Assembly: GCF_000315625.1 (NCBI RefSeq) | Contig: NW_005434670.1 | Span: 1,070,258-1,134,257 of the forward strand | Length of the DNA stretch: 64,000 bases | Reading direction: 5' to 3' | Source of the DNA: Guillardia theta CCMP2712 | Lineage: Eukaryota; Protista; Cryptophyta | Shown: positions 1 to 56,831 of the stretch, in pieces | Numbering within the stretch: the stretch's first letter is position 1 | Layout: each line of letters begins with the position of its first letter | Position numbers and translations under genes: made by a program | Notes under the pieces: generated by a model | What the model saw: only the letters and a program-made list of their open reading frames with translations | Database searches by the model: none | Told to the model about the DNA's origin: nothing

Positions 1-691
1 ACGAGTCCTTCGAGTCTCAGGGAAGCCTGAGATCCACCGCGAGAGTGAGGCAGGAAGAGGAGACGGCGGGGGAGGAGAGGGGAGGCGAGGAGCCGTCAAG
101 TAGTCCCATGGACAGCTTGAACCATGTTGGGGAGGGAGGAGAGGAGAATGGAACGGATGTGGGCGGGGTGGCGGTGGAGGAATCGAGCGGCGCGCGTGAC
201 AGTCAAGTGGGTCGCTTCTTAGTTAACGGCTTCAAGGTGAAGGAGGACGATCAGTTGAAGCCTGTTGTGGAGATCCTCCGCTCCGTACCGAAGCGAGGAT
301 GCCTGTGGAAAGGAGTGCGAAAGAGTTCCAAGCTGAATTTCAGCGAAGGAGAGTCAAATTGCGTGTATCTGCTACCAGAGCAGGAAGAAGATGAAGGAAC
401 TTGTGCTCCCGTCAGCAGCTGGCGGACTTCCCTCGATGTAGAGGTAACGAACTTGATTCTTACGGCAGTTTTCCCTTCTCTCACTCCCCGCTCCCTTCCC
501 TCTGCTTCTCACTATCACCCCCCCTCCTCACCTCTGCGCTTGCTCGAGTACTGGCGCCTGCCTTGTCCTTGATTTCTACTGCCCATGAATACTTGAGGCA
601 GGAAGAGCTGGAAGTGGCCGAGGAGGAGCTTGACCAGCTTGTCCGAGAAAACACTCGCGTGAATGCAGGCTCTTCCTACAGCTTCTGCTGA
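1..691 (+). CDS. 3' part of a hypothetical spliced gene that runs in from the window edge
   Basis: Open frame 45-443 (acidic, then KPVVEILRSVPKRGCLWKG), gtaacg donor at ~444 followed by a pyrimidine-rich intron-like tract, last exon ...EEELDQLVRENTRVNAGSSYSFC* ending at 691. No family recognised. Confidence 0.45.
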
Positions 692-734
692 GTCTTTTGC
701 GCCTCCTCCATGTTTGTCCTACCGGCATACTAAC

Positions 735-3700
735 AAGAAAGAATAGTCTATTAACAATCTCTACTTCTCAACACTGCTTCTCACTGTACAACTGTGTTGC
801 GAAACTGTACATAAGACTTGTGCAGCCCCGACTTGAGGCTGTACATGTCGTGCAAGATCACCTTGACAGCCGCGCGTTAGAGGAGCAGACGGGCGAGAAA
901 AAGACAAGGAAGAAACAAGTAGCCACGACGATCAGCGAGCCAGACGGCAGGAGCAGGACGGGGGAGACAGCTTACCTGCATCTCACAGATATGACGATGG
1001 AGACCTTCGGTTGTCTCCCACTCGCTCAGAGGAACCAGCATGCAGCTGTTCATGATCGAGCTCTTGATGTACCCCACCTGCTCAACCTCAGATCGTAGGA
1101 CAGCTCAGGCGACAATGTCCTACCTCCACACAAACGCACACATCGCGATACCCGACCGTCTCATGCTTGTTGTATGCGGGATCATACCTGCGGTGAAGAT
1201 GAGGAGGAGAGGAGAGGAGGTGCGTGTCGTCAGCTCACCTGTTCTTGATGCATGTGATGCTCATGAACTTCTTGCTCAGCTCCACTCCCTCTCCCTCCGA
1301 CTCCTGCGGACACGAGACTCTCAGACGACTGTCGGTCGGCCCCCAAGACCAGCACAAGCTCACCTCAGCCCCATCAGGCTGCACTTTCCCCCTGTGCGGG
1401 AACCGCTTCTCGTACCCGAACGCAACCTCCGACGTCCTCATCAGATGCTCCACCCACCGCGTCAGCTCCGTCAGGTCCTTCACCACAATGCTGCACCGCA
1501 CGAGGTCCGTGAGCTTGGAGCAGTCTCGCTCGTAGGACCGCACGACTTTCTGCAGAGCGCGCGAGCATGTCTTGATGTTTCCCTGCTTCACCACTCCGTG
1601 CGCGTTCCACCGAGCCACGAAGTCCTGGAAAGGACCGCTCAGCTGCTGCGCTTCTTTGTACAAGAGCTCGATGTCGTTAGATCTTTGCCCCATCTTGAGA
1701 CGTTTGGAGATGCGGGGTTTGTACAGACCCATCAGGATCATCGCCTTCCGACCGAGGCCTCGTCGTTCTGTCTGCCGCGCAACGAGTAGGAGGGAGTTGA
1801 CTTGTCTGGTGAGCTGATACAAACGTTGTAGCATGTCGGCTTCGTTGCGTCTCATCCTGTTCCACGCCTCGCTGAACGCATTTGATTTTTCCTCCAGCTC
1901 CTCGTAGATCGCACGAAGCTTCAAGTAATACATCACAGGCATGGAAATGGCAAGACCAAGCAACACGGTGCCGTACACGTAGAACAAGTAAATGGCCCAC
2001 TGAGCGTTCTGCGCGAAGGTGGTGAAATAGAAGCAGTATGCTCCCTGGAGGAAAAAGACAACGACATAGAAGTACTGCTGTCTGACATGGGCAAAGAAAA
2101 GCCCTACCCAGATAAAGGCCGAAGTAGAAAGACTCCAATACCCATGACAAACAGAGCCGATGCCATTGCCTTGGAATTCACATTGTATGAAGTCCAACAT
2201 GGCGCAGATGACGTACATGAAGGAAACCAGCCAAGCCGTTGAGATCAGAATACGCCCTCCATTCAACGGCGTATTCCTGCGTGCCGCCATGATTCCCATG
2301 ACGTAACACATGGCCCAGAAGATGGAGATGGCTGGATCAGCCAACACTGACCATCGCAACACTTTGGGCTCGACAGGAACGTTGTTATCTGCTTGAAATA
2401 GCCAACGCCGTGTTCCAGTCAAGCCTTGTATCTCGTATGATGCAAAGATCAGGTAAATCATGCTCAAGCAACTGATGATGATCTGAGTAGGGGACTTGAG
2501 TAAACCAGTCTCAATGGCGTTGGAAGTCATCATGGCGAGCCACTGGTTGGCTTCGATGTCTCGATATCGCTCAAGCCGAGACTTGAGGCTTTGAAAGCGC
2601 ATCTCTGACCTCGCCAGGGTCACCGACTGCTTCAGCGCATCCATCGTCTGCTTGTTAAGCACAATGCTGTTGAAGTCTGGTAGCTCATACTCCACGCAGC
2701 TGTGCAGGCGTACGAAATCGTGCAGGTCCAAGTCAATCGCGCTGCGCAGCTGCTGTAGCGAGCTGATCCCCATGAGCGCGAGGATCTGCCTCAGGTCCTC
2801 CAGCAGACCCACAGACCTCAGCCACTCAATCATCTCCGAGGACCTCGGTCGATGCATGGTGAAGTCACTTTGAATCTTGAGGCTTTTCTTGTCCCAGACA
2901 ACCTTTACCGTCTCCATCAGAAAGGTCGCAGCATGCCAGGCAAACGATGAGTCTGACCCTTTGAGCACCAAGAACGAGGTCCTCAGATCCATCATCGGGA
3001 GGGTGAAGGCGTACTCTGACTGGCAAGACTCTCGTTCTTGTGGAGGCAGCAGGATTACAATCGCATCCTTGACTGAGATGTCAGCGATGACCTGGAAGTG
3101 CTTGTCGTTGTATATGCCCATCTTCTGGATGATTACCTTGGCTCGTTCGATGGTCTTCGTGGATGGTGCATGGCTCAAGGCGTTGATCATAGAGAAGGGA
3201 AAGTCGTCCGACCCAGCAGATCTGTCATCGACGAAGATGGGAGCGATCGCACGAATCCACCCAATGTTGTTGTACAGGAAGTAGATGGCTAGGATGATGT
3301 GTAAAAGGATCTCGCTCGACTCATCTTTTCCTTCCTCGGGGCGGATCGAAAGCAGTTTGTTCAAGGTACCTGTGCCCGTGTCATCAAGACTAACGAAAGG
3401 TGCGAAGAGGAGGCTGTTGGTGGAGCACAAGCAGTTGTCCAAGTAATGCGCCTTGCTGACAGCCGGGAGACATTCGAAGTCCAGGTACGTCTTCTCATTC
3501 GAAAACCTGTCGAACTCAAAATCTTCACACGTCTGTGTGGGCTTGTGCAGGAGGAAGGAGAAGGGCAACTGGCTGGAGAGCATGTGGAAGTTCTTGTGTA
3601 TCTCCTTCTGCCTCTGGACGCCCTGCCATTGAGTATCTCCCTGATCTGAGCCTGCCGACGGGGAGGCATTCTGGCTGACATGACTGTACAGCTCAGAGTG

Positions 3701-3850
3701 CGACCTGAACAAGAGAAAATAATCTGTGAAGAGACCGAAGTCCGAGCCAAACACAGTATGCTCCTCCATGGCAAGGATGAAAGCTTTAGGGGCTCCGATG
3801 TAACGGGCGAATCAAGAAATGAAGTATCATGGCGGGGTATGGTCAGGTAT
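735..3850. repeat. Left arm of a ~3.1-kb inverted segmental duplication (partner 6534-9649)
   Basis: Reverse complement of 6534-9649 with constant register (positions sum to 10384 at both ends and at the ATGs). Gapped similarity continues to ~682/9710. Confidence 0.97.
781..3769 (-). CDS. TIR-like/SAM-like/~6TM/RelA-SpoT-like nucleotidyltransferase protein, copy A (5 exons)
   Basis: Long first exon from 3769 plus four 3' introns mirroring copy B (coordinate = 10384 - x); stop at 783-781. Motifs: NIKTCSRALQKVVRSY, DLVRCSIV, KNRYDP..GYRDV, ICEMQV, HKSY; six hydrophobic segments. Confidence 0.85.
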
Positions 3851-5576
3851 CGTGAATTCTTTCACCGTGAAGAGTGGAGGGGTTCGAAGAAGTAGCCTAA
3901 GGTTACGTGATGGACTCTTGCGCACTGCTGATTGCCTTGCACATTGTTACTGCCAGTCCCGACCGACATGGAAATCAGATTTCTGCATCAAGCCGTATCC
4001 AGAAAAAGCACCAAATCTGAGTTTGTATGAGAAGGGGTACACATGCAGTTTCTTGCTGAAAACATTGCCACTGCCTCTGAGGTCGTTTGACCTACGGATG
4101 GCCACAAGGATTCGCAATTTGAGATAGAGATGGGGCAGTAAGTTAAGTCTGTCTTGATATCGACCGTTTTATGATCCACAGAACTAAATCTTCTCTCCAA
4201 ATGGATCTTGTTGAACTTGGATCGCTCAGGGGTACAGGGTGGGGTTTGCACAGCACGAATATAGCTACCCGGATACACAGAACTGGTTAGATAGAGCCAA
4301 GGAAATGAGGAATAGGAAACACAGACGATGATATGAAGCCACTATGGTCAGAGAGGAGGGGCGAGAAAGGCTCCGTCATGATGTTGTTCCGGCCGCTCCA
4401 TCATGCGGAGCATAGCTGGTGATGAACTGACCGCTGTATGGGGGTAGGGTACAATCATCTTTTTTTGTACCTAGGTGGGTGGTGATGCACGAAACGATGT
4501 ACCGGTGCTTATCTATGATATTTTACAGAAATTATTACGGTAGGGTACTCTTGAAAAATCAACCATCACACGTTGTTTCGATAGTAAAAGGGGTAGGGTG
4601 GACTACCCTACCTCTTCTCTGTCTCCTGCGGGAAGCCTCATTCGGTTTACTTTACCACTGAGTTTAACCCCACCCCACCCATCGAAATAACGCACTACTA
4701 CCCCAATGAACTAAGTACCCCTTAAAACACACTACCCCACTAGATTACATGTTGACAATCCACCCCTCCAAGACTTGCGACCTTACCCTACCCCCTAGTC
4801 GACACTGTGTAGTCATCTTGTTGCTAAATGGACCCCTTTTAAATCCCACTTCTACCCACCCTTTTCCCAACTTTTTCATCCCTTTGGTACGCCTATGGAT
4901 TTTGTGGAAGGAGTCATCAAGAGATCACCCATGTCAAGGTACCCACCCCTTCTGCATACCACCTACCCAAGTCTCACGTCGGTACAAATTGGATTGTCTC
5001 TTCCAACCTACAGGGATATCTTGTATCTGGGGTACCCTATAAACCTCCGCCACCACCCCCACCCGCCGTTACACCCCACCCCACCACATCGAAATTTCAT
5101 GCGCAGTTTGTGGCTCGACTCAGGCCGCCAGTAGTAGGAGTCATATTGAAGGAATCGAACACCAAGGTGGGACGTGACCGCAGGTCAAGGGTGTTGGACA
5201 GGGGTGGGGTACTAATATTGGTGGTGGTACGGGCTCGAGAGCCAGAGGCCGATGCCACCAAAACAACACAGGATGGGGTGGGTTATAAAGGCATGCATCG
5301 CGCCGTGATAGGAGGATTATTTTAAAATTATTTACAATTAAAAAATGATTTATTCAAGATCTGAGGCTCCAAAAAGCACCTTTTCCCATCAAGGAGTCAA
5401 CGGGTGGATGGTGTAATTTTGCTGTTTTGATACCGGTGGCCCAAAGTTAATTGTCAGGAGGGAAACAATTCAGGTGGTTTCGTGGAGGACCCCGAAATCA
5501 TCTTCAATTTTCATACGAACTTTACAATTGTCAGCACACCGTCACAACAATACAATAATGGGCCTCCTAAAACATA

Positions 5577-6140
5577 GCCGCCGGCCCGGCGCCGGGGCTC
5601 CGACTCCGGCCGCCCGCGCGGCCGGCCCAGGGGGTCCGACGGCGATCGGGCCGATCATCCGATCGGCGGACTCGATCGGACCGGGCGGCCACGCCGCCGC
5701 CCGGGATGCCGCAGTGACTCTCAGCCGGCCCGGTGCCCCCCCAGGCTTCCGATGATCGGCTCAGCGGCTCCGAGTCAGTCCACTGGGTGGCCAGGCTCAG
5801 GCTCAGGCCACTCAGTGAGTGGCAGCCGGGGCAAGGTGACCGGGGCCGGGCCGGCCGGGCGGCGGGCGACTGCGTCACCCGGCGGGCCGAACGCCGGGTG
5901 CAGTCACGGTGACGGCGGGCCGGGTGCCGGTGCCGCTGAGTGGCCGCGTGGCCCTGCGGCGGACCGTTCCGAGTCCGGCCGAACTTCATCAGTCCGATCC
6001 TGGCACGGTGGCCCATCACCGTGGCACCGTGAGGCCCGGCCGAGTCGGTAACTAAGTTGAAACCTTTCGAGTCTCAAAATGCAAAAGACTAATCAGCCCG
6101 GCCCCCCCCCCGGCCCGGGCCCACGGTGGTTCGGAGGGCC
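5577..6140. promoter_or_regulatory. GC-rich, palindrome-dense intergenic island between the divergent duplicated genes
   Basis: Very dense CCGG, GGCC, CCGATC/GATCGG, GAGTC/GACTC and CACGGT words; only low-complexity ORFs. Regulatory role is inferred from position only. Confidence 0.4.
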
Positions 6141-6533
6141 GTAAACTACTCTTGGACCCGGGTCGTATCACTCCGAATTTTCCACCCCCTAATGTCCATG
6201 ATACTACCCCACCTTTCTGCTATGAAAACTATATATAATAATTGTCCTGTTCGCCACCCCCATTCATAGCCAGACAGCCACCCACCCGGGAGTACACCTG
6301 CTGGCATACAACCGACTCCTCGAACACCTCGTACCCTATGGCGAGCATATGTGGTTTGCCTTCCCACTGCTCTACACACGCACATCCTTGTACCGAGTCC
6401 CCTATGCTTGCAACTGCTCGTGCTTGATATCATCGCCTGCCTCTGACGTCCATCCATGCTAACATCTGACCACAAACAGATTGAGATACATCTCCACATT
6501 AATCCTCAAAGCCTCTTATGAGAGAGATATACA

Positions 6534-9500
6534 ATACCTGACCATACCCCGCCATGATACTTCATTTCTTGATTCGCCCGTTACATTGGAGCCCCTAAAG
6601 CTTTCATCCTTGCCATGGAGGAGCATACTGTGTTTGGCTCGGACTTCGGTCTCTTCACAGATTATTTTCTCTTGTTCAGGTCGCACTCTGAGCTGTACAG
6701 TCATGTCAGCCAGAATGCCTCCCCGTCGGCAGGCTCAGATCAGGGAGATACTCAATGGCAGGGCGTCCAGAGGCAGAAGGAGATACACAAGAACTTCCAC
6801 ATGCTCTCCAGCCAGTTGCCCTTCTCCTTCCTCCTGCACAAGCCCACACAGACGTGTGAAGATTTTGAGTTCGACAGGTTTTCGAATGAGAAGACGTACC
6901 TGGACTTCGAATGTCTCCCGGCTGTCAGCAAGGCGCATTACTTGGACAACTGCTTGTGCTCCACCAACAGCCTCCTCTTCGCACCTTTCGTTAGTCTTGA
7001 TGACACGGGCACAGGTACCTTGAACAAACTGCTTTCGATCCGCCCCGAGGAAGGAAAAGATGAGTCGAGCGAGATCCTTTTACACATCATCCTAGCCATC
7101 TACTTCCTGTACAACAACATTGGGTGGATTCGTGCGATCGCTCCCATCTTCGTCGATGACAGATCTGCTGGGTCGGACGACTTTCCCTTCTCTATGATCA
7201 ACGCCTTGAGCCAAACGCCATCCACGAAGACCATCGAACGAGCCAAGGTAATCATCCAGAAGATGGGCATATACAACGACAAGCACTTCCAGGTCATCGC
7301 TGACATCTCAGTCAAGGATGCGATTGTAATCCTGCTGCCTCCTCAAGAACGAGAGTCTTGCCAGTCAGAGTACGCCTTCACCCTCCCGATGATGGATCTG
7401 AGGACCTCGTTCTTGGTGCTCAAAGGGTCAGACTCATCGTTTGCCTGGCATGCTGCGACCTTTCTGATGGAGACGGTAAAGGTTGTCTGGGACAAGAAAA
7501 GCCTCAAGATTCAAAGTGACTTCACCATGCATCGTCCGAGGTCCTCGGAGATGATTGAGTGGCTGAGGTCTGTGGGTCTGCTGGAGGACCTGAGGCAGAT
7601 CCTCGCGCTCATGGGGATCAGCTCGCTACAGCAGCTGCGCAGCGCGATTGACTTGGACCTGCACGATTTCGTACGCCTGCACAGCTGCGTGGAGTATGAG
7701 CTACCAGACTCCAACAGTGTACAGCTCATAAAGCAGTCGATGGATGCGCTGAAGCAGTCGGTGACCCTGGCGAGGTCAGAGATGCGCTTTCAAAGCCTCA
7801 AGTCTCGGCTTGAGCGATATCGAGACATCGAAGCCAACCAGTGGCTCGCCATGATGACTTCCAACGCCATTGAGACTGGTTTACTCCAGTCCCCTACTCA
7901 GATCATCATCTCAGGTGTTAGCATGATTTACCTGATCTTTGCATCATACGAGATACAAGGCTTGACTGGAACACGGCGTTGGCTATATCAAGCAGATAAC
8001 AACGTTCCTGTCGAGCCCAAAGTGTTACGATGGTCAGTGTTGGCTGATCCAGCCATCTCCATCTTCTGGGCAATTGGATACATTGTTGGGATCATGGCGG
8101 CACGCAGGAATACGCCGTTGAATGGAGGGCGTATTCTGATCTCAACGGCTTGGCTGGTTTCCTTCATGTACGTCGTCTGCGCCATGTTGGACTTCATACA
8201 ATGTGAATTCCAAGGCAATGGCATCGGCTCTGTTTGTCATGGGTATTGGAGTCTTTCTACTTCGGCCTTTATCTGGGTAGGGCTTTTCTTTGCCCATGTC
8301 AGACAGCAGTACTTCTATGTTGTGCTGTGTTTCCTCCAGGGAGCATACTGCTTGTACTTCACTACCTTCGCGCAGAACGCTCAGTGGGCCATTTACTTGT
8401 TCTACGTGTTCGGCACCATGTTACTTGTCTTTACCATTTCCATGCCTGTGATGTATTACTTGAAGCTTCGTGCGATCTACGAGGAGCTGGAGGAAAAATC
8501 AAATGCGTTCAGCGAGGCGTGGAACAGGATGAGACGCAACGAAGCCGACATGCTACAACGTTTGTATCAGCTCACCAGACAAGTCAACTCCCTCCTACTC
8601 GTTGCGCGGCAGACAGAACGACGAGGCCTGGGTCGGAAGGCGATGATCCTGATGGGTCTGTACAAACCCCGCATCTCCAAACGTCTCAAGATGGGGCAAA
8701 GATCTAACGACATCGAGCTCTTGTACAAAGAAGCGCAGCAGCTGAGCGGTCCTTTCCAGGACTTCGTGGCTCGGTGGAACGCGCACGGAGTGGTGAAGCA
8801 GGGAAACATCAAGACATGCTCGCGCGCTCTGCAGAAAGTCGTGCGGTCCTACGAGCGAGACTGCTCCAAGCTCACGGACCTCGTGCGGTGCAGCATTGTG
8901 GTGAAGGACCTGACGGAGCTGACGCGGTGGGTGGAGCATCTGATGAGGACGTCGGAGGTTGCGTTCGGGTACGAGAAGCGGTTCCCGCACAGGGGGAAAG
9001 TGCAGCCTGATGGGGCTGAGGTGAGCTTGTGCTGGTCTTGGGGGCCGACCGACAGTCGTCTGAGAGTCTCGTGACCGCAGGAGTCCGAGGGGGAGGGAGT
9101 GGAGCTGAGCAAGAAGTTCATGAGCATCACATGCATCAAGAACAGGTGAGCTGACGACACGCACCTCCTCTCCTCTCCTCCTCATCTTCACCGCAGGTAT
9201 GATCCCGCATACAACAAGCATGAGACGGTCGGGTATCGCGATGTGTGCGTTTGTGTGGAGGTAGGACATTGTCGCCTGAGCTGTCCTACGATCTGAGGTT
9301 GAGCAGGTGGGGTACATCAAGAGCTCGATCATGAACAGCTGCATGCTGGTTCCTCTGAGCGAGTGGGAGACAACCGAAGGTCTCCATCGTCATATCTGTG
9401 AGATGCAGGTAAGCTGTCTCCCCTGTCCTGCTCCTGCCGTCTGGCTCGCTGATCGTCGTGGCTACTTGTTTCTTCCTTGTCTTTTTCTCGCCCGTCTGCT

Positions 9501-9649
9501 CCTCTGACGCGCGGCTGTCAAGGTGATCTTGCACGACATGTACAGCCTCAAGTCGGGGCTGCATAAGTCTTACGTACAGTTTCGCAACACAGTTGTACAG
9601 TGAGAAGCAGTGTTGAGAAGTAGAGATTGTTAATAGACTATTCTTTCTT
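6534..9649. repeat. Right arm of the inverted segmental duplication (partner 735-3850); 2683-bp unique spacer
   Basis: atacctgaccatacccc at 6534 is the reverse complement of ggggtatggtcaggtat ending at 3850; taatagactattctttctt ending at 9649 matches 735 onward. Confidence 0.97.
6615..9603 (+). CDS. TIR-like/SAM-like/~6TM/RelA-SpoT-like nucleotidyltransferase protein, copy B (5 exons)
   Basis: Exons 6615-9020, 9081-9145, 9197-9260, 9307-9408, 9523-9603; GT-AG introns of 60, 51, 46 and 114 nt splice in frame to ...IKNRYDPAYNKHETVGYRDVCVCVEVGYIK...HICEMQVILHDMYSLKSGLHKSYVQFRNTVVQ*. The 5' end could extend upstream. Confidence 0.85.
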
Positions 9650-10405
9650 TACGGTTGGTATCAGTGCCGGTAGGCCCAGGTGACAAACGGCGCAAAAGGC
9701 TCAGCAGAAGATTTGTTAAATTACGTAGTAAGACTCTTCAATTGACATGTCTTGTAGGGAGATCGTGTATGCCTCTTAACTCCCCAAAAGCCTACTGGGA
9801 ATCATCATGACCGTCGCTATCGGAGGATTGGCCGGGCCTGGGCAGCTGGCCCGGGCCCGACCGCCTGGGCGGTGCCTTCAAAATCAGATCCGCCTCAGCA
9901 AAGCTGCGCGGCACCAAGAGCCATGCTGGCGTCGTTGCTTACCATGCTGAACGAGACAGCAACGGAGGCGCCGGAAGGGTTCTATGCATCAGACGGGCAG
10001 ACCAGCGTCAATGCTGTAAGTGAATGTACTGCTTGTGGCTGTGAGAATATTTGTCCTGTTTCTCCTCAAATGCATTTTTTGTGCCCCTGCGCAAATTTGG
10101 CAATGTGTTGATTCGTGCGCTTCCATGGCTCAAAACCTCTGTCGCTATGGATTACAGTCTAGCTTTGAAACAACACTGTGTTGTCTTGTTAAATTGAAGG
10201 AGAATTGCTGTTGACGATTTCTTCTTTTTTCTCTTTTTACAGTACAGCGCGAATTGTGGAGTAGTTTACGTCTACGGCCCCCCAGGGTTTCAGCCAAAGA
10301 CATGGGGACAGGGAAGTTGTTTTGATCCGACCATGGTATCATTGCCCGCCGATTATGTAGAAGTGTTTCAATAGATATTCAAAGAGAGAAGCATCTGGAC
10401 TCATG

Positions 10406-11634
10406 TCAATCCAGCAGCTCTAGGTCATAACCAACTGCAAAGTGGCAACTTCCTGTCACGATCCTCTTCTCCTGCAGTGTATCAAGCGGATCACGGTTAT
10501 CCTTACGGCAGTCAGATACGTTCTTCCGCTCCCTCCCCTGGTTGGATCTCATGCTCGATAAACCCAGTCCAGCAGCGAACTCGTCGAAGGTCATCCTAGC
10601 GGGGGCTAGCTTGAAGATGACGATCATCTCTTTCCTGAAGACCTCATTGAGCTTGTGATTCTTCGATCTGTTGATGATGGATCAGATCTCATATCTCCCA
10701 CAGCTGAGGGGGGAAAGCTGATCCCACCTGATCTCCTCGCAACTGAACCAGGGCTTGATGCCCTGCATGAACAGTCCCTCGATCCTTTCCGAGCGATGAG
10801 AAGCGGAGATGTAGATCTGGGGGAGCTCCTCCTATAACGATGGGGAGAGGATGTCACTGACTTCATCCTCCTCGTTGCTTCCACTAGACAAGCACCTCAC
10901 TCATGTTCTTCAAGGGTTTCCTCCTCCTGGCGTGCAAGCAGCAGAGGGTACGGAGGGTTCGGATCAGCGGCTCAACAATCTCCTCCTGCCGCAAGTGTGA
11001 GAAGGTAAGAGGAGAATGGTAATATCGGAATGTCACCTCATAGAAGACATCTGACATGATGATGAAGTCGAACGACTCATCCTTCATGAGCGCGATCGCC
11101 TCCTCGCCATGGTTCCAGTCCAGGGTAATCGCCTCGATCGGCCGCGCGTCAAGCTCGAGGGAGTCCGAGTTCAACAGGATGTTGCCGTGCAGCAGAGATA
11201 TCATGCACTCCTTGTCGCTCATGACCACTCTCGCCGCCCCTTTGACGGACAGCGTCAACCCCAAGTATCCTGTGCCCGCCGCTAGCTCCAGCACTCTGCT
11301 CTCCGCGAGTACCTCGGAGAACTCTGCAAGCATGAATCGCCCCAGCGCAATGGCTCCTTTCCAGACGTCTCCTCCTGTGTCTGTCAGCCTGTCAGTCCTG
11401 CATGCGGCATCGAGAGCGAGGCAGCGACTTCACCTTCGAGCAGGAGCTTTGTGTTGGTCATAATCTTTATGCCACCAGGGAATGAGCGGACCCCCAAGTT
11501 GCGAGGAGGGATCTTGAGCGCGCCCTCCATGTCCGCGTCTTCCCATGCTGAGCTCATGCCTTGCTACCAGCCATGCTCTCCTCCTCTTCTCCCATGCAGT
11601 CGCGCCATTCCTGGAGGTACCTGACAGGCACCAT
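10406..11634 (-). CDS. Seven-beta-strand protein methyltransferase, METTL21/Methyltransf_16 family (multi-exon; ends approximate)
   Basis: Spliced EGGDVWKGAIALGRFM, motif I VLELAAGTGYLGL, VVMSD, LDWNH and FDFIIMSDVFY (DxxY motif typical of this family). Confidence 0.85.
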
Positions 11635-11933
11635 GGCGCCCAGGGGCAGCGGCGTCAGTTAATTCCCTGTCCTGCTATTAAAGCTGCTGTCCCGGCCATG
11701 GAGAATCTTGGAGCGATCCTCAGACGAGAGGGAGGGAGGGGAGGGGAGGGACAAGAGGCTAGGGGAGAGCAGGGGAGAGACGAGGGAAGGTAGAAGATGC
11801 ATGCAGAGGAGGGAGCGGAAGGCAGAGGAGGCAGAGGAAGGCAGAGGAAGGCAGAGGAGGTTGAGAGCACGAGAGTGGTTGGGTCGCATGAAAGCATGCA
11901 GTTGTGGACGAGCCTAGAAGATGCGATGGACTG

Positions 11934-13447
11934 ATGGACTCGGGAGGAGGGACCTTTGAGTGGAGGAGCAACGACGCCCTGCCGCGGTCCTCCCGATGCC
12001 AACACGACATGTCACTCGGGCAGTCGGGTACTCAGAGTCTGTATGAATGTCCCAAGTTCGTTCCGTTCCAGCTCTTGGCCCAGGTACAGCAGTTGTTGTT
12101 GGACAACGTGGATGGACGGAGAGGATTTCAACATGAAGCCTTCAAGTTGTGTCTGCGGAGATCGGAGCTGATGAGCGTGTTGAAGGACATGCGACGGGAA
12201 GGAAGCAGATCGAGGCAGGACAGGGACAGCAGGGACTTGGCCAACTCATGGCCGAACGTTGTGGATGTGAAGCATGTGTTTGCTGCTGCTCTTCCTTTCC
12301 TGGAGAGCGATGTGGTGATGGCGAGATTGAACATCACTAGCAGCAAAGAATCATTGGAAGAAAGAGCGTTGATATGCCTTCAAACTCGAGTCAAGGCTCT
12401 TTTCCTGCTGCACTGCGTGTTTTATTCGCAGACTGCAGTCAAGAAAGAGCCCATCCTCCTCACCCCTGCTTCCTGGCGGCATGTTCTCGACCTCTGTCAA
12501 CTAGCCCATCAGCTTCAAGAGAGGAGATCAGCTGCGCTACAAGTCAAGAGCTGCCATACTGGCGACTGGTCGTCGGTTATCTTGCGCGGGGAGGATGCAG
12601 ACATGAGCGATTTCTGCTCTGCATTTCGCATGCTGTACATGGCTGGGGCGATGCGCTTTGCTGCAGTGCCTGCCGCCATGAACGCGAGCAACTACAGGAG
12701 ATGGGTGAATCAGGTAGACGGCAACTTGTTGCATGCGTTAGGAATACGACTTGAGTACAAGCGCGAGCAAGCCTCCTCTTCCTCCCTCCCTCCCTTCCTC
12801 CCTCCCCCTCCTTCTCCGTGGTTTTGCCCTCCTTCCTGCTTTCTCCTTGTGCCGTTAATCTTGTCTTCTCGGGTATTGATTGCAATGATGAAACAGGAGG
12901 CAGAACAAGACCAAGTTCCTGAGAGAGAGCAGAACAACGCTGAAACAATCTCGAAAGGATTCAAAATGGCCGAGCAAGTTCTTGAGGGTTATGTCATCAT
13001 CTTTCAACTTCCTGCTCGACCTGTCTGATCTCTTTCCAGATCTTCACGCAGGACGCGATCTAGAGACCTCGAGGCTGTAAGATTGCGTTCTGATGTTGAT
13101 CGTGCCATCACCATCTCTCTTGTTGCCATGCTGCCCTCCCCCATGCTGACGTCACCGCTGTCACATTTGACGAGGCTGACAACAGCTTGCAATGGCAGGG
13201 AGGAGGCAGTAAACAAGTACTGTGAAGCCAAGAACCAGGTTGATCCAAAATCTTGTGAGGGCGAGGTGATGACTTTTACCTCCAGCTGAAGGAGGAAGGC
13301 GAACTCGTTCCCTTCTATCTTGAGTCGAAGATAGCAGACTATCTGCAGGTCAACTGTTCTCAACCCCATCCATCATCTATTCCGTTTCTTCTCTCCTGTT
13401 CATGTTCTTCTCTCCTGTTCACGTTTCTTCTCTCCTCCTCCTCCTCC

Positions 13448-29200: not shown

Positions 29201-32200
29201 CAAAGCATTCACTTTCAAGCTCGGCAAGATCAAATTCTGATACTTGGTCGTCATCCAATTTGAGCCATTTGCCAGACACAGGATCCTTTGCAAACGAATA
29301 ATAATGTCCGAAACTAAATTGTCCACTATGTACTACGATTCCTTTCAGCTCATAGAGCAGATGCTCTCCGCTATTTGTACTCTTGCTCGAATTCTGATCA
29401 ACCTTCCCTTCGTCAACTTCACTTGTATTGTCCATGCAGATGTCTTCATCTCCCTCGACATCCTGAGCTTTGGGAGGTTGAGTATATGGGGCCAAATCAA
29501 GAGTTAAGGGAAAGGCTAGTCTATCATTCAACTTCACAAACCCATTTCCTTGAAATTGAAATCTGTTTAGCTGCACACACAGAGTCTCTGGCATATTTTC
29601 GCCATCCAAAAAGAGGGTTCGTCGCATCGCTCGTTTGATGGCTCCTTCATGCGTAGTTCCATTTCTGAATGCTTCAGCTTGCGCTGCAATGGTACATTTC
29701 TCACAATCTACCCTGCTGTCGCCTGTCATTAATTCACCAGCCAAAGCATCTTCGATAGCCCTTTCCAAGGTACCCATTCGTTCAACATTCACCTTGAACG
29801 ATTTCTCGAAAACTCCAGGATTTATAGGCTTGGTATGAGGACACTCGACAGAAACTAATTGACTGCAAACCCGCACGCGGAAGCATGACTTCAGACACTC
29901 AGAGTGTTCCTTGCCCCCGACCTGTTCGATCACTTCAGAAAAAGATTGTAATCAAGAAAAAATTCTAACCTCTCGTTCGAGCCTTTCGAGGAGTTTATCC
30001 AAAAACTCAGACGAGTCATTCTGTGATGTAACACGAAAGTGAAGTCCAAGGTCTCTGCATGCTTCAACAAGCTGGATAGGATCGAAAGACTGCAATTCAC
30101 TGTCCACCATAAAGCGGAACGTTCTTTGAAGCTGCCTGAGCAATTCTCCATGAGGAACAGGATCAACCTTCTCAGGACGCTCGCCCTGTTCGCAAATGAC
30201 GCAGATTCTGTTATTCCAGTCATTCTCCAATGTACAAATCTGGCACTTCCAAAGTTCTTCAGCTTTCTCGGGAGGGGCGGGCGCAAGGGGAGCGGTAAGT
30301 ATACATTTTCTCAAATCATCATCGAGAAATAATTGTTGTATCATCGCATTCATGTAGCAGGTTGCTCCCTGATTCTTAAGGCCCACACATGCCAGCTTTC
30401 TCCTTTCCACTGTTGCCCTGTGTTCCCAGTCCTCCTTCAAGACAGAATTTAATCGATTCCAATATATCTTGACTGGGATTCTTGTGCTTGAAGCGAAGTC
30501 ATTGATCATGTCTGCAAGCCCAGTGATGTAGTTCGGAGCATACTTTGTAACACAAATAAGAAGCAATTGCCATGCTGCTTCTCTCGTTTCTGTTGTTTCA
30601 CACAAAGGTGCAACTTGTAACCAAGAATTTTGACCAAGAGTTGCTTTTCTTGTCATCATTTTCATCGCATTACCCACTCTTTTTGAGCAGGGGACTCTCA
30701 TCAAAAAATCATTGTAGAGCTTGGGAACTAATTTTTCTGCAAGACTTTTGAGTTCTACATTAGTTGTCATTTCTGGCCTTTGCATCACGTTATGAAGGAG
30801 ATTCATCAGTTCATCCATCATTTGGTTACAAATAGACAGTCGATCCGCCACTAAAAGCATGTTGGTTGCAAGTTGACAGGCAGTCTGCATCCTCTTGACT
30901 GGCTCGTTCAAGGTGTCTTGGGCCAAAAAAAACTTAGTCAACAGGGCAAAAAATTGCTTGCAGGTCCCACTGTCCCGATTAGCAGCATTGACACATTCAG
31001 TCATCAAATCAACTAATTGGCTTGCCCACTCCTTGGATGTCTTAGCACTTGAAAGCAGGAAACTAGAATAAGCTGCTCGTATAGAAGAATCAGAGTGGTG
31101 CATGACAATCTTGTTCACAATTATGCCCGCATTGGAAGACATCTTACTGCCTTCTTGCAATCCTGAGTCAGTTAAAGACAAATGAGATAGCTCTGCTGAA
31201 GATTTAGGTTCAAAGAACTTCAAGGCATGATCCTTTGCTTCCTTTTGAAGACTAGAGCTAAATATCAGCGCCTCAAGGATTGTTGCACCATCTAGCAGAG
31301 CATCTAGAATCTTTTGTGTCATCTCAAGACGGTTGATAAGAATAATCATATCGCAGGTCAGACTGGTTACACGATTTAGAATTGGGAGGACAGACCCGTT
31401 GCTCAATACACTCTTTCCACTGCAACATAGGCGTAGCACACGAAGAATGATAGGAATTCCAATCAAGCGAAGCATTTTTGCTTGATTTTCTCCATGATCC
31501 TGAGCTTTCTGCAACTTTAGCACAGTTTCCATCAGATCGACCAATGCACTGAAACCTCCAGCATTGAGAAATTCAGAACACCAAGCAGGATCTTCCAACT
31601 CGGATTCAATTATTTGTAAAACGTAAAGAGATCGCCACATGTTACCATGCGAAGATAATACTTCACCCCAGTGCCCTTTATATTTGATAACTTTCTGTTC
31701 TTCTTCTCTCTGGGAGGGCAAAATCTGCAAAACTTCCCAAAGTATCATGTGCAGTTTTTGCAAGTGTGCATCACCCATGATTTCAAACAATAAATTGAAA
31801 AAAGAAACGTTCTCCGCAAGAGTAACTCCAATGTTTCCAAACAATATTTCTGGCAAACAATAAACTTGATTTTCAATTTTGAGGTCTGCTCCATCAGTTA
31901 TATTCAACTCTTCGAATGTTGTTTGCGGCCCTCGAACAATACTTTGGCCGTTATGAATAACCAATACTTGTGGGTTGTTTGGTGCAATTTTCGAGTTGAT
32001 CACCTTGAAAACGATCTCATCAAAATTTTCTCTACTCCCCACTTGAATTGTCCTACTTGTATAGGTAACAGATGATTTGTACATTTCCTCTCGATTGCTT
32101 CGCACATGAAAACAGATAGAGATCGGTTTCCCTTTGCCGCGATATCCGTGAGAGCGTTGTGTAGCGTATTGAATATAGGAGAAAACATTGTCACATATGC

Positions 32201-35200
32201 GTAGGTGGCCGCGGAGAAAGTTTCGAATAAGCTGTAAGCAACGCTTGACTCTGAGTTCCCTGTATGTGGAATCAATGTCCATTGCGTTGACTGCTTGCTG
32301 TAACATATGGATAATCTTTGCCAGCACAACTTTCTGAAAAGAATGTGGCATATACCGCGAGATATCTACAATCATATCATGAGCTTTCTTTGCAACAACA
32401 TCATCCAAACTCAAGAAACATACATCCCACAAGAAGTCAAGGCCCTCTAGATGTTCATCAGTAATGCAGACTATCTCGTATGCCAGGATGTTCACAGAAA
32501 GCTCGTCTTCTAACAAATGCCAGTCATGCAAGTCCGTCCAGTCATGAGTATCTTCCTTTCCGGTGTCATCCCATCGTACTGTATGCCGTTGAGCCCTATC
32601 TCTATTGCTCGACGGCGGTGAATAGTGGCAAATCGTGCCATTATGCATCTTTTCATCCTTCCATAGAACACGTACACGGCGACCAACAAAAGCTGGACCG
32701 TTAATCTTGCAACCAGACTTCTGACCACTTCTCCCAACTGTCTCCCACCTTGAACAAGCGTCGTTTACATCAGCGAAAAGGGCTTGAAACGAGTTAAATC
32801 CATGGGGCTTCAAGTTCGATGGATCCATCTTACAGATGTAAGTTTGAAATAGATAAAGTTGTACATCTTTGCAGAAGATGCCACCAGAGTCTGCTGCAAG
32901 CCTGATCCACCTCAAACACACCTCTGTTGGGCCTCCAAGGGCTTCCCACAACTGGTCAACTTGACGAACTTCTAACATAATGTTATAGTCCTGATGTTCT
33001 GCCGAAGTATTTTCTAACAAATATCTCAATTGTGAAAGTCTAGTCCATAATTCAGTGTTGAGAACATCATCACTCTCCATGACCTTGACATCTAAACCTT
33101 GACTGAGAGTTTTTAGATTGGCCATGCAAGCACCAATAACATCGAACATACTCTGCAAACCATGAATGCAAGCCTCCCTGGTTTTGTCTCCACGCTGGGC
33201 GAAATTGAACCTTGGAAATAGCCTTATAACTTCTACAAGAACAGCGAAAGCCCCTTTCATTGCCAATGGAGATGTATTCGGATCTTTCACAATGTTACAA
33301 CAGAGCTCGGCGACGTATCCTTTACAAAATTTGCCTTGTCCATTTGCTCCAACACCGTCACTTTCTCCCCACGACGATTGCAAACAATGGAAAAGAGAAT
33401 CTTGCACTAGCTTGGAAAATACTTCTTGGTCTTCACAGAATGGAGTCAAGAGTGCAGCAACAAGAACATCCATCGCTCTTTTTGCCACAGCGCGACCTTT
33501 CATCATCACATCAACTGTCGCATACAATCCATGTAACTTCGAGGTGTCAAAAATGGCAGTTGCAAGCTCAAATGCAGCCTGCAGGCAATCTGAACCTCCC
33601 CTCTTGAGCGAACCCAGCGCTGAGAATGTAGAGGATGGCTCGCTTGCCACGGTGTCGATTTTGACTTCGCCATCACTTTGCTTCAACACAGCTGGAACAT
33701 CAAATACGTCCATGATTCTGTTCAAAACAATCATGGTTTGCTTTTTCCCCCATTTTGGTAACATAGCAAGAATGACCTAGCATTGCGAATGCAATCAGCA
33801 AATCAAAAAAATTAAAGAAAAAGTTTCAACAACCTTGTGCACTTCAGCTCTGACGCTGCCAACGTGCATGAAAGCGGCATCGACCACAATGTTCATGCGA
33901 TACTCATTCATGTCGATTATCGAGAGCAAACTGCATGTTTCCGACACAATCGTGGCGTGCGCCCTTTCTCCAAATAGATCCTCAAGTACTTCATGCTCTT
34001 CTAACCAAGCACATAACGCTTGGCCATTCGAGGATTTGAATTCTTTGTCGTTGCGAATCACCTGCTCAAGAGACACCAACGCTGATCTTCGTTGTGCCCA
34101 AACGCCTGATTTGGTGCCTTTCAAGGCAAGCTGCTTCAACGCCTCTTTGAAACGATACTTGTATTTTTTCCTAGCACGAAAGTTACATTCATCTGGCAGT
34201 GTATGTCAACAGGAAAAATCACCTTATGTCCGAATTCTGAATGACTGTCGCAAGCCCTGTTCCGTGTAAAGGAGCAGTTTTCTTGAATAGTGGGATTAAA
34301 TTAATGCACACTTGCCCTGCTTCTGAGCTTTCCTTGGCCGGTGCATCTTCAATACGTTTTGCGATTCTGTCCAATATCTCTTCTGCAGGCAACCCCGACT
34401 CTCCGCTATTATCGATCGATTTCGCAACCGAGATGAGCGACTTCCAAGGAGCTTTCTCTAAAAGCTGTACGCGCTTTTGGGGGCCTCCTCCTTCCTTCCA
34501 AAGTCTCATGCATTCCGCATGTAGTTCCAAAGCAACGCGATGTGAGGCTTTGTTAACATCCCTCTCAAAGCTGAATATGGGCGAGTTCATGTCAAGGACG
34601 CAATCAAGCGCATCTATCAAGTCAGCAGATCCCCTGTCCAAGCTGGCCAACACAAGTTTTACTGCACAGGTTAGCGCAGTCTGGAAATACTTGGATTGGT
34701 CCTCTGCAAAGAGCTCATCAAAAGATGACGGAGGCTTCAGGTATATTACCTGCCGGATGATTACCCTTTCTTCTGTACTCCCCGCACCAGTCATCCCAAG
34801 CAGAGCCAGGCACAGCAGGGCCATGGCCGTAAGGAGTTGCAGGGGCGTCTCCTTCACCGCAGAATAAAGGCAAGGCTCTTGGGATGTATTTCGTCGCAAA
34901 ATCTTGTGACTGCTTTGTGTTGACACATTCCAAAGCTGCTTGAAAGGCGGCTGCATAGTCACACCAAATAATGCGCCTCTTTTCCATGACCTTTGCAACC
35001 AAATTTAAATCATGTTTCACCTCCACACTCCAGCATTCAAGTTGGAGTCACTCTTACCTTTTTGAATGCCGCTGCATGATCTTTTGTCATAATATATGTT
35101 GAGTCAGGAGGAACATCATTGATCATATCAACGCAATCGTTTCCCTCCATGCCTGATATGACAGAGGACAAAAAAGGTTAACAAAGGAGATTCTGCACAT

Positions 35201-40699: not shown

Positions 40700-43600
40700 T
40701 CAGGCATATAAATTTACAAGGGTAGGAGACCCGTCGGCATCCTCGGTTTGGTACAAGCGTGAGCTTGCGATGGGCTGGAAGCTGCCGTCTTGTGAACCTG
40801 CTCTCACACCTTCAGGCGTGATGATCAACGAGGCACGACTCACCAGTATCCTCGAGCGAGACGGTAGAAGCAGCATAGTAGTCTCGTGGCCTGTAGTACC
40901 TGCAGTAGATGTCACTCTCCTCGCTAGAACCACCAACAAACTTACTCGGCAAAGATATCAAACTTGACTCCTGCTCCCTGGAATGTGGCTGAACCAGTTG
41001 GCTGAGGTACCTGCAAGGCTTGTGAGATTGCTGGACCAGGTCAGCAATCACGCACAGCGAGGGAGGTCCATTGGTCGATGATCAGTTGGTTGTCGACCCA
41101 CAGCTTGACTCGTTCGTTCGGGTTGATGTTCCATCGGAACTGCCTCTGCGGAGCGTAATCAAGACGAGCAAGGAGCAAACCAACACATCAAACCGTGTAA
41201 TCAGGAGACCCTTGACAGGATGCGACGGCCTCACATGCGGAGATCACACCCGACCATCGGATGACCAGATCGCACAACTGTACCCCGCACACGCTTTGAA
41301 ATCCAGTCACTTACTTCCGGGAGTCCTTTCATACAAGTACCTGCCGGCGCCAACGAGAGCAGGATCGAGCTGCGGTGGGTACGTGGAGGTGGTCCCAGTG
41401 GAGATGCTGCTTGGATACTTGGCCTCGAGGCTGCACAGGTCACAGGGTGCAGGGAGAGATGTGGTGATGGAAGAAGCCGAGTAGTACGTTGCTTGCACTC
41501 CACAGCGTCGAGCCATGACGCGTACAAGTAGTGAACCTGTTGGAGCTGGTCAGCACTTGCCGTCTCTCACAACTGGCAGCAGCCACCTGCCCAGCTGGGG
41601 ATGGGATGGCCGGGATGATGTAGGAAGCGAGGATGAGGCCTGTTGCTTCAACAGCAGCGAGGGAGGCCGTAACGGTTGGGATATCCCCTGGCTCATTGAT
41701 CGCCGTCGAGCCATAGTAGGGAGGTAGGTAGGGGGTGCCCTGTATGTTAGAGCCAGACGTCCGCACGACTCGTACGAAGTAACTGCTCGCTGTCGCAGCC
41801 GAGGCGTTGAGCGTGTTTCCGAAGGAATCTCTCAGCTGGATTTGAAACTGAGTCACTGAGGGCTCCACGGTCGTTGCAGTCAACCCAGAGCCACTCAGCG
41901 TTGACTTTGACCCGCAACTCACTCCAGGGAGCACAACAAGCCGGAATGGGCTCCCCGAAATATCGTTTCCTGTCTGCTTCACATATGAAGAATAATCCTG
42001 AGCGACGTAGAGTATGTAAGATGCCAGAAAATAACCCGGAGATCCAGGGATGGACGTGACTGTTCCCGTGCTGTACAGACTTTGGACAAGGCCGACTGTC
42101 TGCGTTGAGAACGAGACGTCAGTAAACATCGGGACATTCCCAAAAGAATCTTTCGCAACGATTGTGAACGAAGCGTATTGTCCAGCAAATGCCAAAGTTA
42201 ATCCATCACCGTACGCAATGGATTTCCCCGAGCAAACCTGACCACCGAAAACTTTCAGAGCACCGAAGGCGTTTGGAACATCAAAGCGTTGATGCAGTCT
42301 GTTGGACGGGATTGGATTCTTGGAAACAGAATCTCCTGCTGAATAATACTGACTCTCCCATGTCAGAGAGTGAGCGCAGGACGAGACGTTGGGGCACTTG
42401 TACAAGGCGCTGATGTCATAGAGCAACTCAGCCGTCTCGAACGCTCTGAGTGCTTGAGGACTTGTGCTCGTGAGAGAAGTCCACTGATCAATGATCAGAA
42501 GGTTGTCGACCCAGAGTTTCACTCTCTCATCTGCGTTTGGACCCAAGGAGAACTCAAACGTATAAGTCTGTGCTAGACTTGGTCTTACAAATCCTGTCCA
42601 TCGCACCCCGAAGCCGCTTGCGGTTGACACGGATGGCAGCGGCGGCGAGCTCGCGCTAGACCAGTCGATGTTGTAGACTGACCGCGAAGAGATCGGGTCA
42701 CCGGCTCCTAAGTCGTAGGAGGTTCCCGTTTGAGATGAGTTGTCGTAGTAAGTTGCTGTCAGACCGTTTTCAGGGGATAGAGATGTCATGACGGTGAATT
42801 CACCGCGCAGGAATGCGACATAACTTACAGACAATGTCCCGTCAAGATTGTCCAGGAGGCTTGCTGGTTGAGAGACGGGGCAACCCGCGCACACCAGGGG
42901 AGGGAAGTATCGAGTAGCGCCGACGGTGGGCATAGTAAGAAAGAAGAGGTCGTTGAGGGCGGGAGTGCAAGGCGACGATCCATCGATCCACAGCTGATCA
43001 ATGGAAGACAAGTTGGCACATCGAGCACTGGTATCATAACCTGAGATCACCGTCCACCGACCCGCGCAAGCCCCGGTGTTGAAATCGATGTAAAAGCCTT
43101 GAAGGTCTCCCGCAAGGTCGATTTGTATTTTTCCTTCACTCAAGGCACAAGAAGCAGATTGTGAGACTACCTGGATGCCGTATGTGAAGTACATCCCCGC
43201 ATAGGCACCTTTGATTTGTGGTCCATAAGACTGACATGACTGTAGCGTGTTGAATGGATCCTGACAAGCGTCACTGAATATCCGAACGACAAACTGATCG
43301 CCGCCCTCTGATCGAAAGTTGGAGAAAGCATCCACGCTCTGAATGACAAAGTACGTGCTCGCTCCCGCCGTTGATATCGATAACCCGTCACCCGTCACCA
43401 TGCTCAAGGTTGCGCAGGCCTGATTGGGCACCACCCGCACTGCAAGAGGAGAATTGCTCAGAGCTGAAGAGCTGAAGAGATGAAACCTTGGGATGGGAGT
43501 CAGGTATTGGTTCAGACTACTGATCCAGAACAAGGACAAGCCCGTGTTCATCTTTGGCAGGCTGCTCGGGTCCTTCTTGTACTCTACTAGGATGTCCCAG

Positions 43601-56387: not shown

Positions 56388-56831
56388 CGCAACATCAAGT
56401 GCAAAAGGATGATGCAACAAGAAGGGGTTAAATCAACTTTCTATCGTTAGAAGAGAATTTCAAACAAACAGCTTTCACATGCAAGAACGAGATCACTTCA
56501 CTTTGTGACTGAGATGCGCTCAGTGAGCTAGAGGGCAGGTCGTTCATGTCTTCGCTTCCCCTTCCTGGTATCGATCTGCGTGCTTCCAGGCAGCCTCGCG
56601 TCTTCCTCCTCGCTCCCTCCTCTTCCTCCTCTTCGTTGATGCTGCCATGGATCCTCGACTGGTCGTCTATCCGGCAGTTTTTTTAAAACTTTTTGACAGA
56701 CGGTCAAATTTTGATAGATAGATGAGGAAATGCACGAAACAAGAAAGGATCTTGTTGATGAGAACAGGTCGCATACGCTTGTATGTTACGCTATGGCTAC
56801 ACCTCTGACACTCTTATTTACACTTCTAGTT

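Follow-up and report, generated by a model that had tools for sequence, protein, structure and literature searches.

The inverted repeat and the patches that separate its two genes

The window analysed here is nuclear DNA of the cryptophyte Guillardia theta CCMP2712, a 64,000-nucleotide (nt) stretch of contig NW_005434670.1 (positions 1,070,258 to 1,134,257, forward strand) in an assembly of 87 Mb. A repeat search found a single inverted repeat, whose arms (735-3853 and 6531-9649, 3119 nt each) are arranged head-to-head and lie 2677 nt apart. Each arm carries one gene of 905 codons with four short GT-AG introns, the ends of which are identical in both copies, and the starts of both genes face the spacer. 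The two copies are near-identical over most of their length and differ in short patches, most of which fall in the part that encodes a predicted membrane module. The exon model was obtained by threading the database protein P0007 through both arms; exons were joined for codon counts only, and searches and folding were run with the database proteins P0001 and P0007. The locus is laid out as follows.

735-3853, minus strand: arm 1 with copy 1; exons 3769-1364, 1303-1239, 1187-1124, 1077-976 and 861-781; block of the ancestral type
3854-6530, no strand: spacer between the gene starts, 2677 nt; no homology between its two ends
6531-9649, plus strand: arm 2 with copy 2; exons 6615-9020, 9081-9145, 9197-9260, 9307-9408 and 9523-9603; carries most of the derived states
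7710-8435, plus strand: divergent block of copy 2, codons 366-607; linker helix 368-385, predicted transmembrane (TM) helices TM1-TM6 and loops
2674-1949, minus strand: equivalent of the divergent block in copy 1
8682-9603, plus strand: C-terminal RelA/SpoT-like domain of copy 2, about codons 690-905; four introns; protein identical in both copies
9021-9080, plus strand: intron 1 of copy 2, 60 nt; GTGAGC...CCGCAG in both copies; holds the TGT/TGA difference at 9074

Base-by-base comparison of the arms revealed 60 substitutions and no insertions or deletions (indels). The encoded proteins have 24 amino-acid differences, H200Q and A201T plus 22 within codons 366-607, which confirms exactly the count in a preliminary description made from the sequence alone, where 22 of 24 differences had been placed between the end of the SAM-like region and the last TM helix. 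The motif pairs quoted there (FNSIVLNKQT/SNSVQLIKQS, SCL/SGV, AMCYVM/AIGYIV, VVFF/VLCF and YGTVLLGLA/FGTMLLVFT) are all present, and its statement that the first ~200 residues are identical holds for residues 1-199, with differences at 200-201. Codons 608-905 contain five differences, which are all synonymous, as had been listed: CTC/CTG at codon 672, two in exon 2 (TCG/TCC and GGA/GGG) and two in exon 5 (CAC/CAT and TAT/TAC). The C-terminal protein is identical, in agreement with the proposed conserved output, and divergence is confined to the linker helix and the six-TM module apart from codons 200-201.

The differences are strongly clustered. The block of codons 366-607 makes up 726 of the 3119 nt and contains 45 of the 60 differences (binomial P = 4e-17). 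Neighbouring differences at most 3 nt apart numbered 29 compared to 3.3 expected (maximum 11 in 20,000 permutations), and clustering holds inside the block too, with 27 close pairs compared to 7.7 expected. The result is a mosaic with about seven short tracts, 4-27 nt wide, six of which lie in the linker helix and six-TM module.

7214-7217, plus strand: mini-patch, codons 200-201, CAT GCA / CAA ACG, in the N-terminal domain
7711-7737, plus strand: patch 1, codons 366-375 in the linker helix, immediately ahead of the membrane domain; 10 of 27 nt changed
7911-7919, plus strand: patch 2, codons 433-435 in TM1; eight of nine bases differ, AGT TGC TTG / TCA GGT GTT
8072-8090, plus strand: patch 3, codons 486-492 in TM2; 10 of 19 nt changed; six of seven third positions differ
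8321-8363, plus strand: patches 4 and 5, codons 569-572 and 580-583 in TM5
8410-8433, plus strand: patch 6, codons 599-607 in TM6; Y599F, V602M, G605V, L606F and A607T

Silent (dS) and replacement (dN) divergence were estimated as Nei-Gojobori counts. Between the copies, dS is 0.122 and dN 0.049 in the block (dN/dS 0.40), compared to 0.013 and 0.002 in the N-terminal part (dN/dS 0.18) and 0.026 and 0 in the C-terminal part (dN/dS 0), so that silent divergence in the block is 5-10 fold above the rest (Fisher P = 6e-6, silent sites). On the copy-2 branch, dN/dS of the block is 0.47. These block ratios (0.40-0.47) are 2-5 times the gene background of 0.07-0.2, determined against an environmental relative and Hanusia phi, and are well under 1. 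Moreover, silent and replacement changes share codons (ATT/GTA, TGC/GGT, TTG/GTT, TGT/GGA, GTC/ATT, ATG/GTT and GTC/CTG), and 8 of the 15 codons with a first-position change are also changed at the third position compared to 1.4 expected (P = 5e-6); point mutation followed by selection for new residues does not predict silent changes in the same codons as the replacements. Third positions within the patches differ between the copies at 21 of 37 sites, between copy 1 and Hanusia in the same codons at 20 of 36, and between copy 1 and the environmental relative at 6 of 37. Copy-2-side changes fall 14, 6 and 22 times on codon positions 1, 2 and 3, respectively, with a transition to transversion ratio of 14:22 compared to 57:32 for the relative. 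This profile is apparently that of old divergence under purifying selection, and the patches look like old, constrained divergence set in young sequence. Over long distance the other parts of the gene are faster than the membrane block (dN to Hanusia 0.125 and 0.129 compared to 0.104).

Several further observations concern individual patches and the gene models. An 11-nt core of patch 1 (TGTACAGCTCA, 7718-7728) recurs reverse-complemented at 6689-6699, ~1 kb upstream in the same gene; the chance of such a match is ~4% for one patch, and we judged it a coincidence. Cys434 and Cys488 (7914-7916 and 8076-8078) both become Gly in copy 2, and the family members P0011 and P0015 likewise pair Gly with Gly at these columns; the paired replacement suggests a packing contact between TM1 and TM2. 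Both copies have intact open reading frames (ORFs) and identical canonical splice sites, in agreement with the proposal that both are functional. The TGA at 9074 (TGT in the other copy) cuts the unspliced copy-2 ORF to 819 amino acids; it is intronic and therefore not a nonsense mutation. The NCBI models GUITHDRAFT_150189 (EKX54216.1) and GUITHDRAFT_150190 (EKX54217.1) comprise the C-terminal 296 residues only (M610-Q905), and the N-terminal domain, SAM-like region and membrane module are unannotated in both. Because these models are limited to the identical C-terminal part, the difference between the paralogues is invisible in the annotation. The flanks outside the arms have no mutual homology and all four are unique, and therefore they are useless for dating the duplication.

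Predicted architecture of the protein

The AlphaFold model of P0007 (mb6197da90cca; 90 homologues) has a predicted local distance difference test score (pLDDT) of 84.9 and a predicted TM-score (pTM) of 0.82. The model predicts an N-terminal alpha/beta domain, a helical SAM-like bundle (~308-355), the linker helix (368-385) and six membrane helices (426-449, 473-498, 501-533, 543-561, 564-585 and 590 onward), followed after TM6 by a long exit helix and, C-terminally, by an alpha/beta domain. The membrane module folded by itself reached a pLDDT of 96.

In a Foldseek search of the PDB, the first 21 matches to the C-terminal domain, and 29 of the top 30, were small alarmone synthetases (SAS) or GTP pyrophosphokinase-family proteins, with a probability of 1.00 and TM-scores by target of 0.45-0.58. 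The very best of these matches, with TM-scores by target of 0.5-0.58, are all SAS. The best E-value (1.7e-3) lies marginally over the 0.001 line because the full 905-amino-acid model was the query. The C-terminal ~220 residues are thus predicted from the model to have the small-alarmone-synthetase fold; membership in the RelA/SpoT superfamily would entail pyrophosphate transfer to a purine nucleotide. Neither the ORF, its C-terminal piece nor P0007 matched Pfam RelA_SpoT or any other Pfam family, and the sole phmmer match in the PDB was the (p)ppApp synthetase Tas1 (E = 0.17). The domain resembles SAS and toxic SAS (toxSAS) enzymes (RelQ/SAS1, RelP/SAS2 and Tas1) in fold, and its motif IK..RA.QK...Y..D..K..DL.R aligns with Tas1. 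By contrast to these enzymes, the Guillardia protein lacks a Pfam RelA_SpoT match, its domain is fused to an N-terminal domain, a SAM-like bundle and six membrane helices, and it is eukaryotic and nuclear-encoded.

The fold of the membrane module gave generic helical-bundle matches only, with a best E-value of 0.78 in Foldseek against the PDB, TM-scores by query of at most 0.45 in the ESM Atlas, and a best Z of 8.7, to designed bundles, in a VIA wide search. Foldseek rows linking the whole model mb6197da90cca to TRPM channels have probabilities of 0.08-0.11; they hint at most at a similar layout, an N-terminal domain plus six helices, and are not evidence. Ten database proteins of 140-614 amino acids (P0079, P0080, P0091, P0093, P0097, P0100, P0104, P0106, P0133 and P0138), which belong to no Pfam family, match the membrane module alone (~417-616), and therefore the six-helix module also occurs standalone or in other contexts. 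Thirteen of the 15 substitutions between the copies that fall in helices (TM1, TM2, TM5 and TM6) lie, by helix position, at one depth, 0-6 residues cytosolic of the midplane. This common depth is suggestive, and a helical-wheel comparison with the variable faces of the family was inconsistent. The layout of a six-helix module, a long exit helix and a cytosolic nucleotide-converting domain is shared with six-TM membrane adenylyl cyclases such as Rv1625c (PDB 7yzi); however, the catalytic fold differs, and the similarity of the membrane parts is generic (Z 6.0, the noise level for helical bundles). Membrane adenylyl cyclases with six-TM anchors have been proposed as receptors. The membrane module of the Guillardia protein is a putative sensor.

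Polarity, transcripts and other paralogue sets

Two outgroups served to polarise the differences: L014, a 3.6-kb genomic contig from an ENA metagenome that is ~3% diverged, evenly along the gene, and Hanusia phi transcripts, with a protein identity of 78%. The closest relatives are the lineage behind ENA run ERR2281808 and Hanusia phi; the sampling of relatives is thin, with one environmental contig and one transcriptome. The derived state lies in copy 2 at 43 of the 60 differences and in copy 1 at 13, with four ambiguous, and copy 1, L014 and Hanusia have the same patch residues at most sites. Patch 2 reads TCT TGC TTG in L014, and therefore both copies have changed there. Outside the patches, the copies share 89 derived states relative to L014, including 28 variable sites in a row without a difference between the copies; the permuted mean for such a run is 8.5 (Sawyer-type run test, P < 5e-5). 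Correspondingly, dS outside the block is 0.013-0.026 between the copies compared to 0.098 to the relative. In the block, 45 sites differ between the copies and 20 are changed in the relative alone, compared to 15 and 69 elsewhere (P = 2e-10).

The changes on the two copies are not independent in position. Eight of the 13 copy-1 derived changes lie within 6 nt of a copy-2 change compared to 1.15 expected, and inside the block the same is true of six of seven (P = 0.001). By contrast, the relative's changes do not co-localise with those of copy 2 (5 of 89), which implies that both copies diverge at the same spots and that these are not general hotspots. Hanusia was also tried as an outgroup for the patches and rejected: its base is matched by ~5-6 of 36 copy-2 changes, about the chance level at its saturated silent divergence. 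No similarity of the Hanusia 5' untranslated region (UTR) to either upstream flank was detectable. L014 has multi-base codon changes of its own (window 7981-8006 and 8470-8473: W456Y TGG/TAT, V464S GTT/AGC, A620K GCG/AAG and K705R AAA/AGG), and its substitutions are mildly clustered, with 15 close pairs compared to 7.4 expected.

From 6587 to its 3' end, transcript contig L016 has the copy-2 base at all discriminating sites, and it continues into the downstream flank of copy 2. Its first 570 nt and the base at 6533 equal the copy-1 upstream side (3854-4423, there as 5' UTR), which places the switch point between 6533 and 6587. The same copy-1 side of the spacer (3854-4423) matches the 5' flank of L014, which, like L016, joins the copy-1 upstream flank to the copy-2 downstream flank (3854-4423 with 6531-10015). 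A crossover between the arms would put the spacer in the opposite orientation and so yield this joining; the two contigs may reflect such a flipped spacer or may be assembly chimeras. The MMETSP protein P0007 contains the copy-1 residue F458 in a copy-2 background. Among the assembled transcripts found, none has the copy-1 membrane block.

Divergence concentrated in the membrane block recurs in two other young paralogue sets of the family. A locus with three tandem paralogues (G000:C37:144969-160000; L011, L012 and L019), in which N runs limit the comparison, includes the pair L011/L012, for which the proportions of silent (pS) and replacement (pN) differences are 0.123 and 0.070 in the membrane block (dN/dS 0.57) compared to 0-0.045 and 0-0.008 outside it. 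With the third copy, L019, included, the copies are near-identical except around codons 438-470 and 524-545, in outer loops and at helix ends, where every copy has a variant of its own. A second inverted pair of the family (G000:C117:81161-91500; L006 and L017) is essentially identical over >400 codons on one side and 200 on the other, and the difference reaches 50-62% of bases in codons 501-520 and 541-560; one copy of this pair, with indels and an internal TGA in the divergent stretch, may be decaying. The three sets do not share variable positions: the overlaps are 3, 1 and 5 positions (P = 0.31, 0.88 and 0.19), and the positions that vary in the block are no more variable family-wide (entropy 2.68 compared to 2.60, P = 0.46). 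What recurs across sets is the membrane block and not particular sites.

Elsewhere in the window, other large ORFs (29952-33764, 41440-48140 and 53592-56420) encode a USP-type ubiquitin hydrolase that has an ARM repeat, together with three proteins containing PA14, filamin and GEX2-like immunoglobulin domains. No Rfam match was found in positions 1-12000.

Origin of the patches and comparison with known systems

The explanation that we prefer, although we consider the case for it to be evenly balanced, is that gene conversion between the arms homogenises the two genes while short tracts in the membrane domain stay copy-specific. Concerted evolution by arm-to-arm conversion would keep the paralogues of the 3.1-kb repeat near-identical, and homogenisation would have reset silent divergence to 1-2.6% in the N-terminal and catalytic RelA/SpoT-like domains, the SAM-like region and the introns as well as between the patches. 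About seven tracts would have escaped, and in them both silent and replacement sites would have diverged, chiefly in copy 2. Selection would hold a functional difference between the duplicates against the pressure of conversion, which is the signature of a 'peak of divergence', and clustered mismatches may themselves block conversion and so sharpen the patch edges. The likely outcome would be a pair of proteins that share one output enzyme and have become different in their membrane (input) modules. We infer both parts of this scheme, conversion as the homogenising force and selection as the holder of the patches. Conversion with copy-specific tracts explains the raised dS, the co-localised changes, the shared derived states, why no donor was found in the assembly and why other paralogue sets show the pattern again. 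Patchy conversion between the arms had been named in the preliminary description as an alternative to diversification, and it is the better fit of the two.

Several results weigh against conversion with copy-specific tracts. The copy-2 patch type is absent from L014 and from all four Hanusia phi transcripts, which have the copy-1 type; if the patches have the age that their silent divergence implies, the copy-2 type should be present in relatives or have been lost there. L014 passes both arm ends unbroken, which suggests a single copy in that relative. Silent changes are asymmetric between the branches, with 14.5 on copy 2 compared to 4 on copy 1, and the patches, 4-27 nt wide with 25-150 nt of perfect identity between them, have sharper edges than simple tract-length models predict. 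Finally, expression of copy 1 is suggested by indirect signs, the 5' part of L016 and F458 in P0007.

Some of these results would be accommodated by a recent duplication, with copies as young as the flanks indicate, followed by multi-nucleotide mutation in situ, for example through error-prone repair at mismatches while conversion is attempted, and by fixation in copy 2 under relaxed or positive selection. This scenario, which we regard as rather unlikely, is consistent with a relative that appears to be single-copy and of the copy-1 type, with the failure to find a donor, with transversion-rich changes (14:22), with ~11 merged copy-2 events in the block compared to 4-6 expected if neutral, and with multi-base codon changes in the relative's lineage (TGG to TAT, GTT to AGC and GCG to AAG). 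Changes on both copies also cluster together, as mismatch-nucleated repair errors would. However, second codon positions are spared (6 of 42), the replacements are mostly conservative with hydrophobicity retained in every helix, and complex events amount to ~6 of 11 in the block compared to 1 of 13 elsewhere in the arms. Moreover, 8-10 changed bases per 9-27 nt are far beyond known spontaneous multi-nucleotide mutations, and the concentration of divergence in the block of each of three independent paralogue sets is a pointer to domain-specific selection. It seems to us improbable that the patches were made in place by a local mutagenic process acting where neighbouring copies already differ, such as error-prone short-patch repair of heteroduplex mismatches while conversion is attempted; if this were true, membrane stretches would be repeatedly rewritten with the enzyme kept identical, and the locus would represent a conversion-coupled diversity generator for eukaryotic receptor-like genes. 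Two other mutational routes were rejected. Targeted hypermutation, either A-specific as in diversity-generating retroelements or C-specific as by deaminases, does not agree with a spectrum that is not base-specific (the ancestral bases of the copy-2 block changes tally to T 12, C 9, G 8 and A 7). Template switching was rejected because local templates are at chance level only: no nearby direct or inverted template was found for any patch, with best matches of 7-11 nt.

Micro-conversion into copy 2 from a diverged third paralogue, since lost or missing from the assembly, would make the patches resemble diverged homologous coding sequence with positions 1 and 3 changed and position 2 kept, as they do, and C434G, M487I and C488G put copy 2 in the state of a related subfamily (WAIG or WAVG in TM2). 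Searches for the donor argue against this explanation, and we consider it distinctly unlikely. The next closest paralogue in the 87-Mb assembly has 32-38% protein identity, a DNA search of the assembly with the block returned the two copies only, and three patch sequences had no match at ≤3 mismatches beyond chance. G. theta paralogues with WAVG differ at most bases of that patch, and because the DNA of the related subfamily differs, the three replacements look like coupled TM1/TM2 packing changes rather than import. Nor does a donor predict the co-localised copy-1 changes, of which there are 7 compared to about 1-2 expected. A donor for the divergent block of the C117 pair was likewise not found. 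Two metagenome scans of public collections returned no match, and neither did exact-protein look-ups with both unspliced ORFs and P0007. The possibility, named in the preliminary description as one that would refute diversification, that the block simply derives from a third paralogue by conversion thus found no donor support in the assembly. Diversifying (positive) selection on point mutations in a sensor module, in the style of immune receptors, had been its main proposal. The replacements are confined to the membrane module with an identical output domain, the block dN/dS exceeds background 2-5 fold, and the three tandem C37 copies each have their own outer-loop variant, as such selection would predict. 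By contrast, dN/dS stays below 1, which weakens this reading by its own criterion. Silent divergence rises to the same extent as replacement divergence, the two kinds of change occur in the same codons, the sets have no significant overlap in variable positions (P = 0.19-0.88), and family entropy is not raised. We consider diversifying selection very improbable; of the proposal that both copies are functional, with a diversifying sensor and a conserved output, the intact frames and the identical output stand, and the diversifying selection finds no support. Least probable of all, in our view, is an assembly artefact or strain mixture in which one arm sequence is not in the genome as drawn. Such an artefact would account for the joining of the copy-1 upstream flank to a copy-2 body in L016 and for the lack of an assembled transcript with the copy-1 membrane block. 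However, there are no N runs in positions 1-12000, all four arm flanks are unique, the RNA-derived L016 confirms the copy-2 states base for base, the relative and Hanusia confirm the copy-1 states as real evolutionary sequence, and F458 in P0007 implies copy-1 reads.

If conversion with copy-specific tracts is correct, the locus would provide a clean natural case, at fine scale, of duplicates in which one module differentiates and the remainder is held identical by conversion. The ~22 residues on four or five membrane helices are candidates for what distinguishes the two proteins. The family is uncharacterised and cryptophyte-centred, combining a six-helix module without a recognisable fold with a predicted alarmone-synthetase-like enzyme, and these residues may offer a first pointer to its input side. 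The analysis also carries a methodological warning, in that amino-acid counts alone suggest positive selection and silent sites indicate otherwise.

The 'peak of divergence' framework for duplicates under gene conversion (PMC3924837, section 3.2) includes exon 5 of the human opsin genes for red and green and RHD/RHCE as examples, together with the model of Teshima and Innan (PMC3924837). As in these examples, the Guillardia paralogues resemble each other, along most of the gene, more than they do orthologues, local peaks are high in silent and replacement divergence, and the peaks coincide with a functional module. Guillardia differs in having about seven peaks of 4-27 nt with perfect identity between them, in the one-sidedness of the changes (copy 2), and in a copy-2 type that is not found in relatives.

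Clusters of plant nucleotide-binding leucine-rich repeat (NLR) proteins and other immune receptors, in which the signalling domain is homogenised and the recognition domain hypervariable, share with this family a conserved output domain, a variable input module, local duplicates and recurrence in several sets. By contrast to the NLR clusters, dN/dS in Guillardia is below 1, each cluster has two or three variants, variable positions are not shared between sets, and the variable part is a predicted membrane bundle instead of a solvent-exposed repeat surface.

Conversion between arms is known from the palindromes of the human Y chromosome and from plastid inverted repeats, which have flip-flop isomers. 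The Guillardia locus resembles these repeats in its head-to-head arms, unique spacer and arm identity of ~98%, and in the hints of spacer inversion given by flanks that are joined differently in the transcript contig and the relative. It differs from them in the small size of its arms, which span 3.1 kb and hold one gene each, and in an arm identity that would be broken by selected or conversion-resistant patches.

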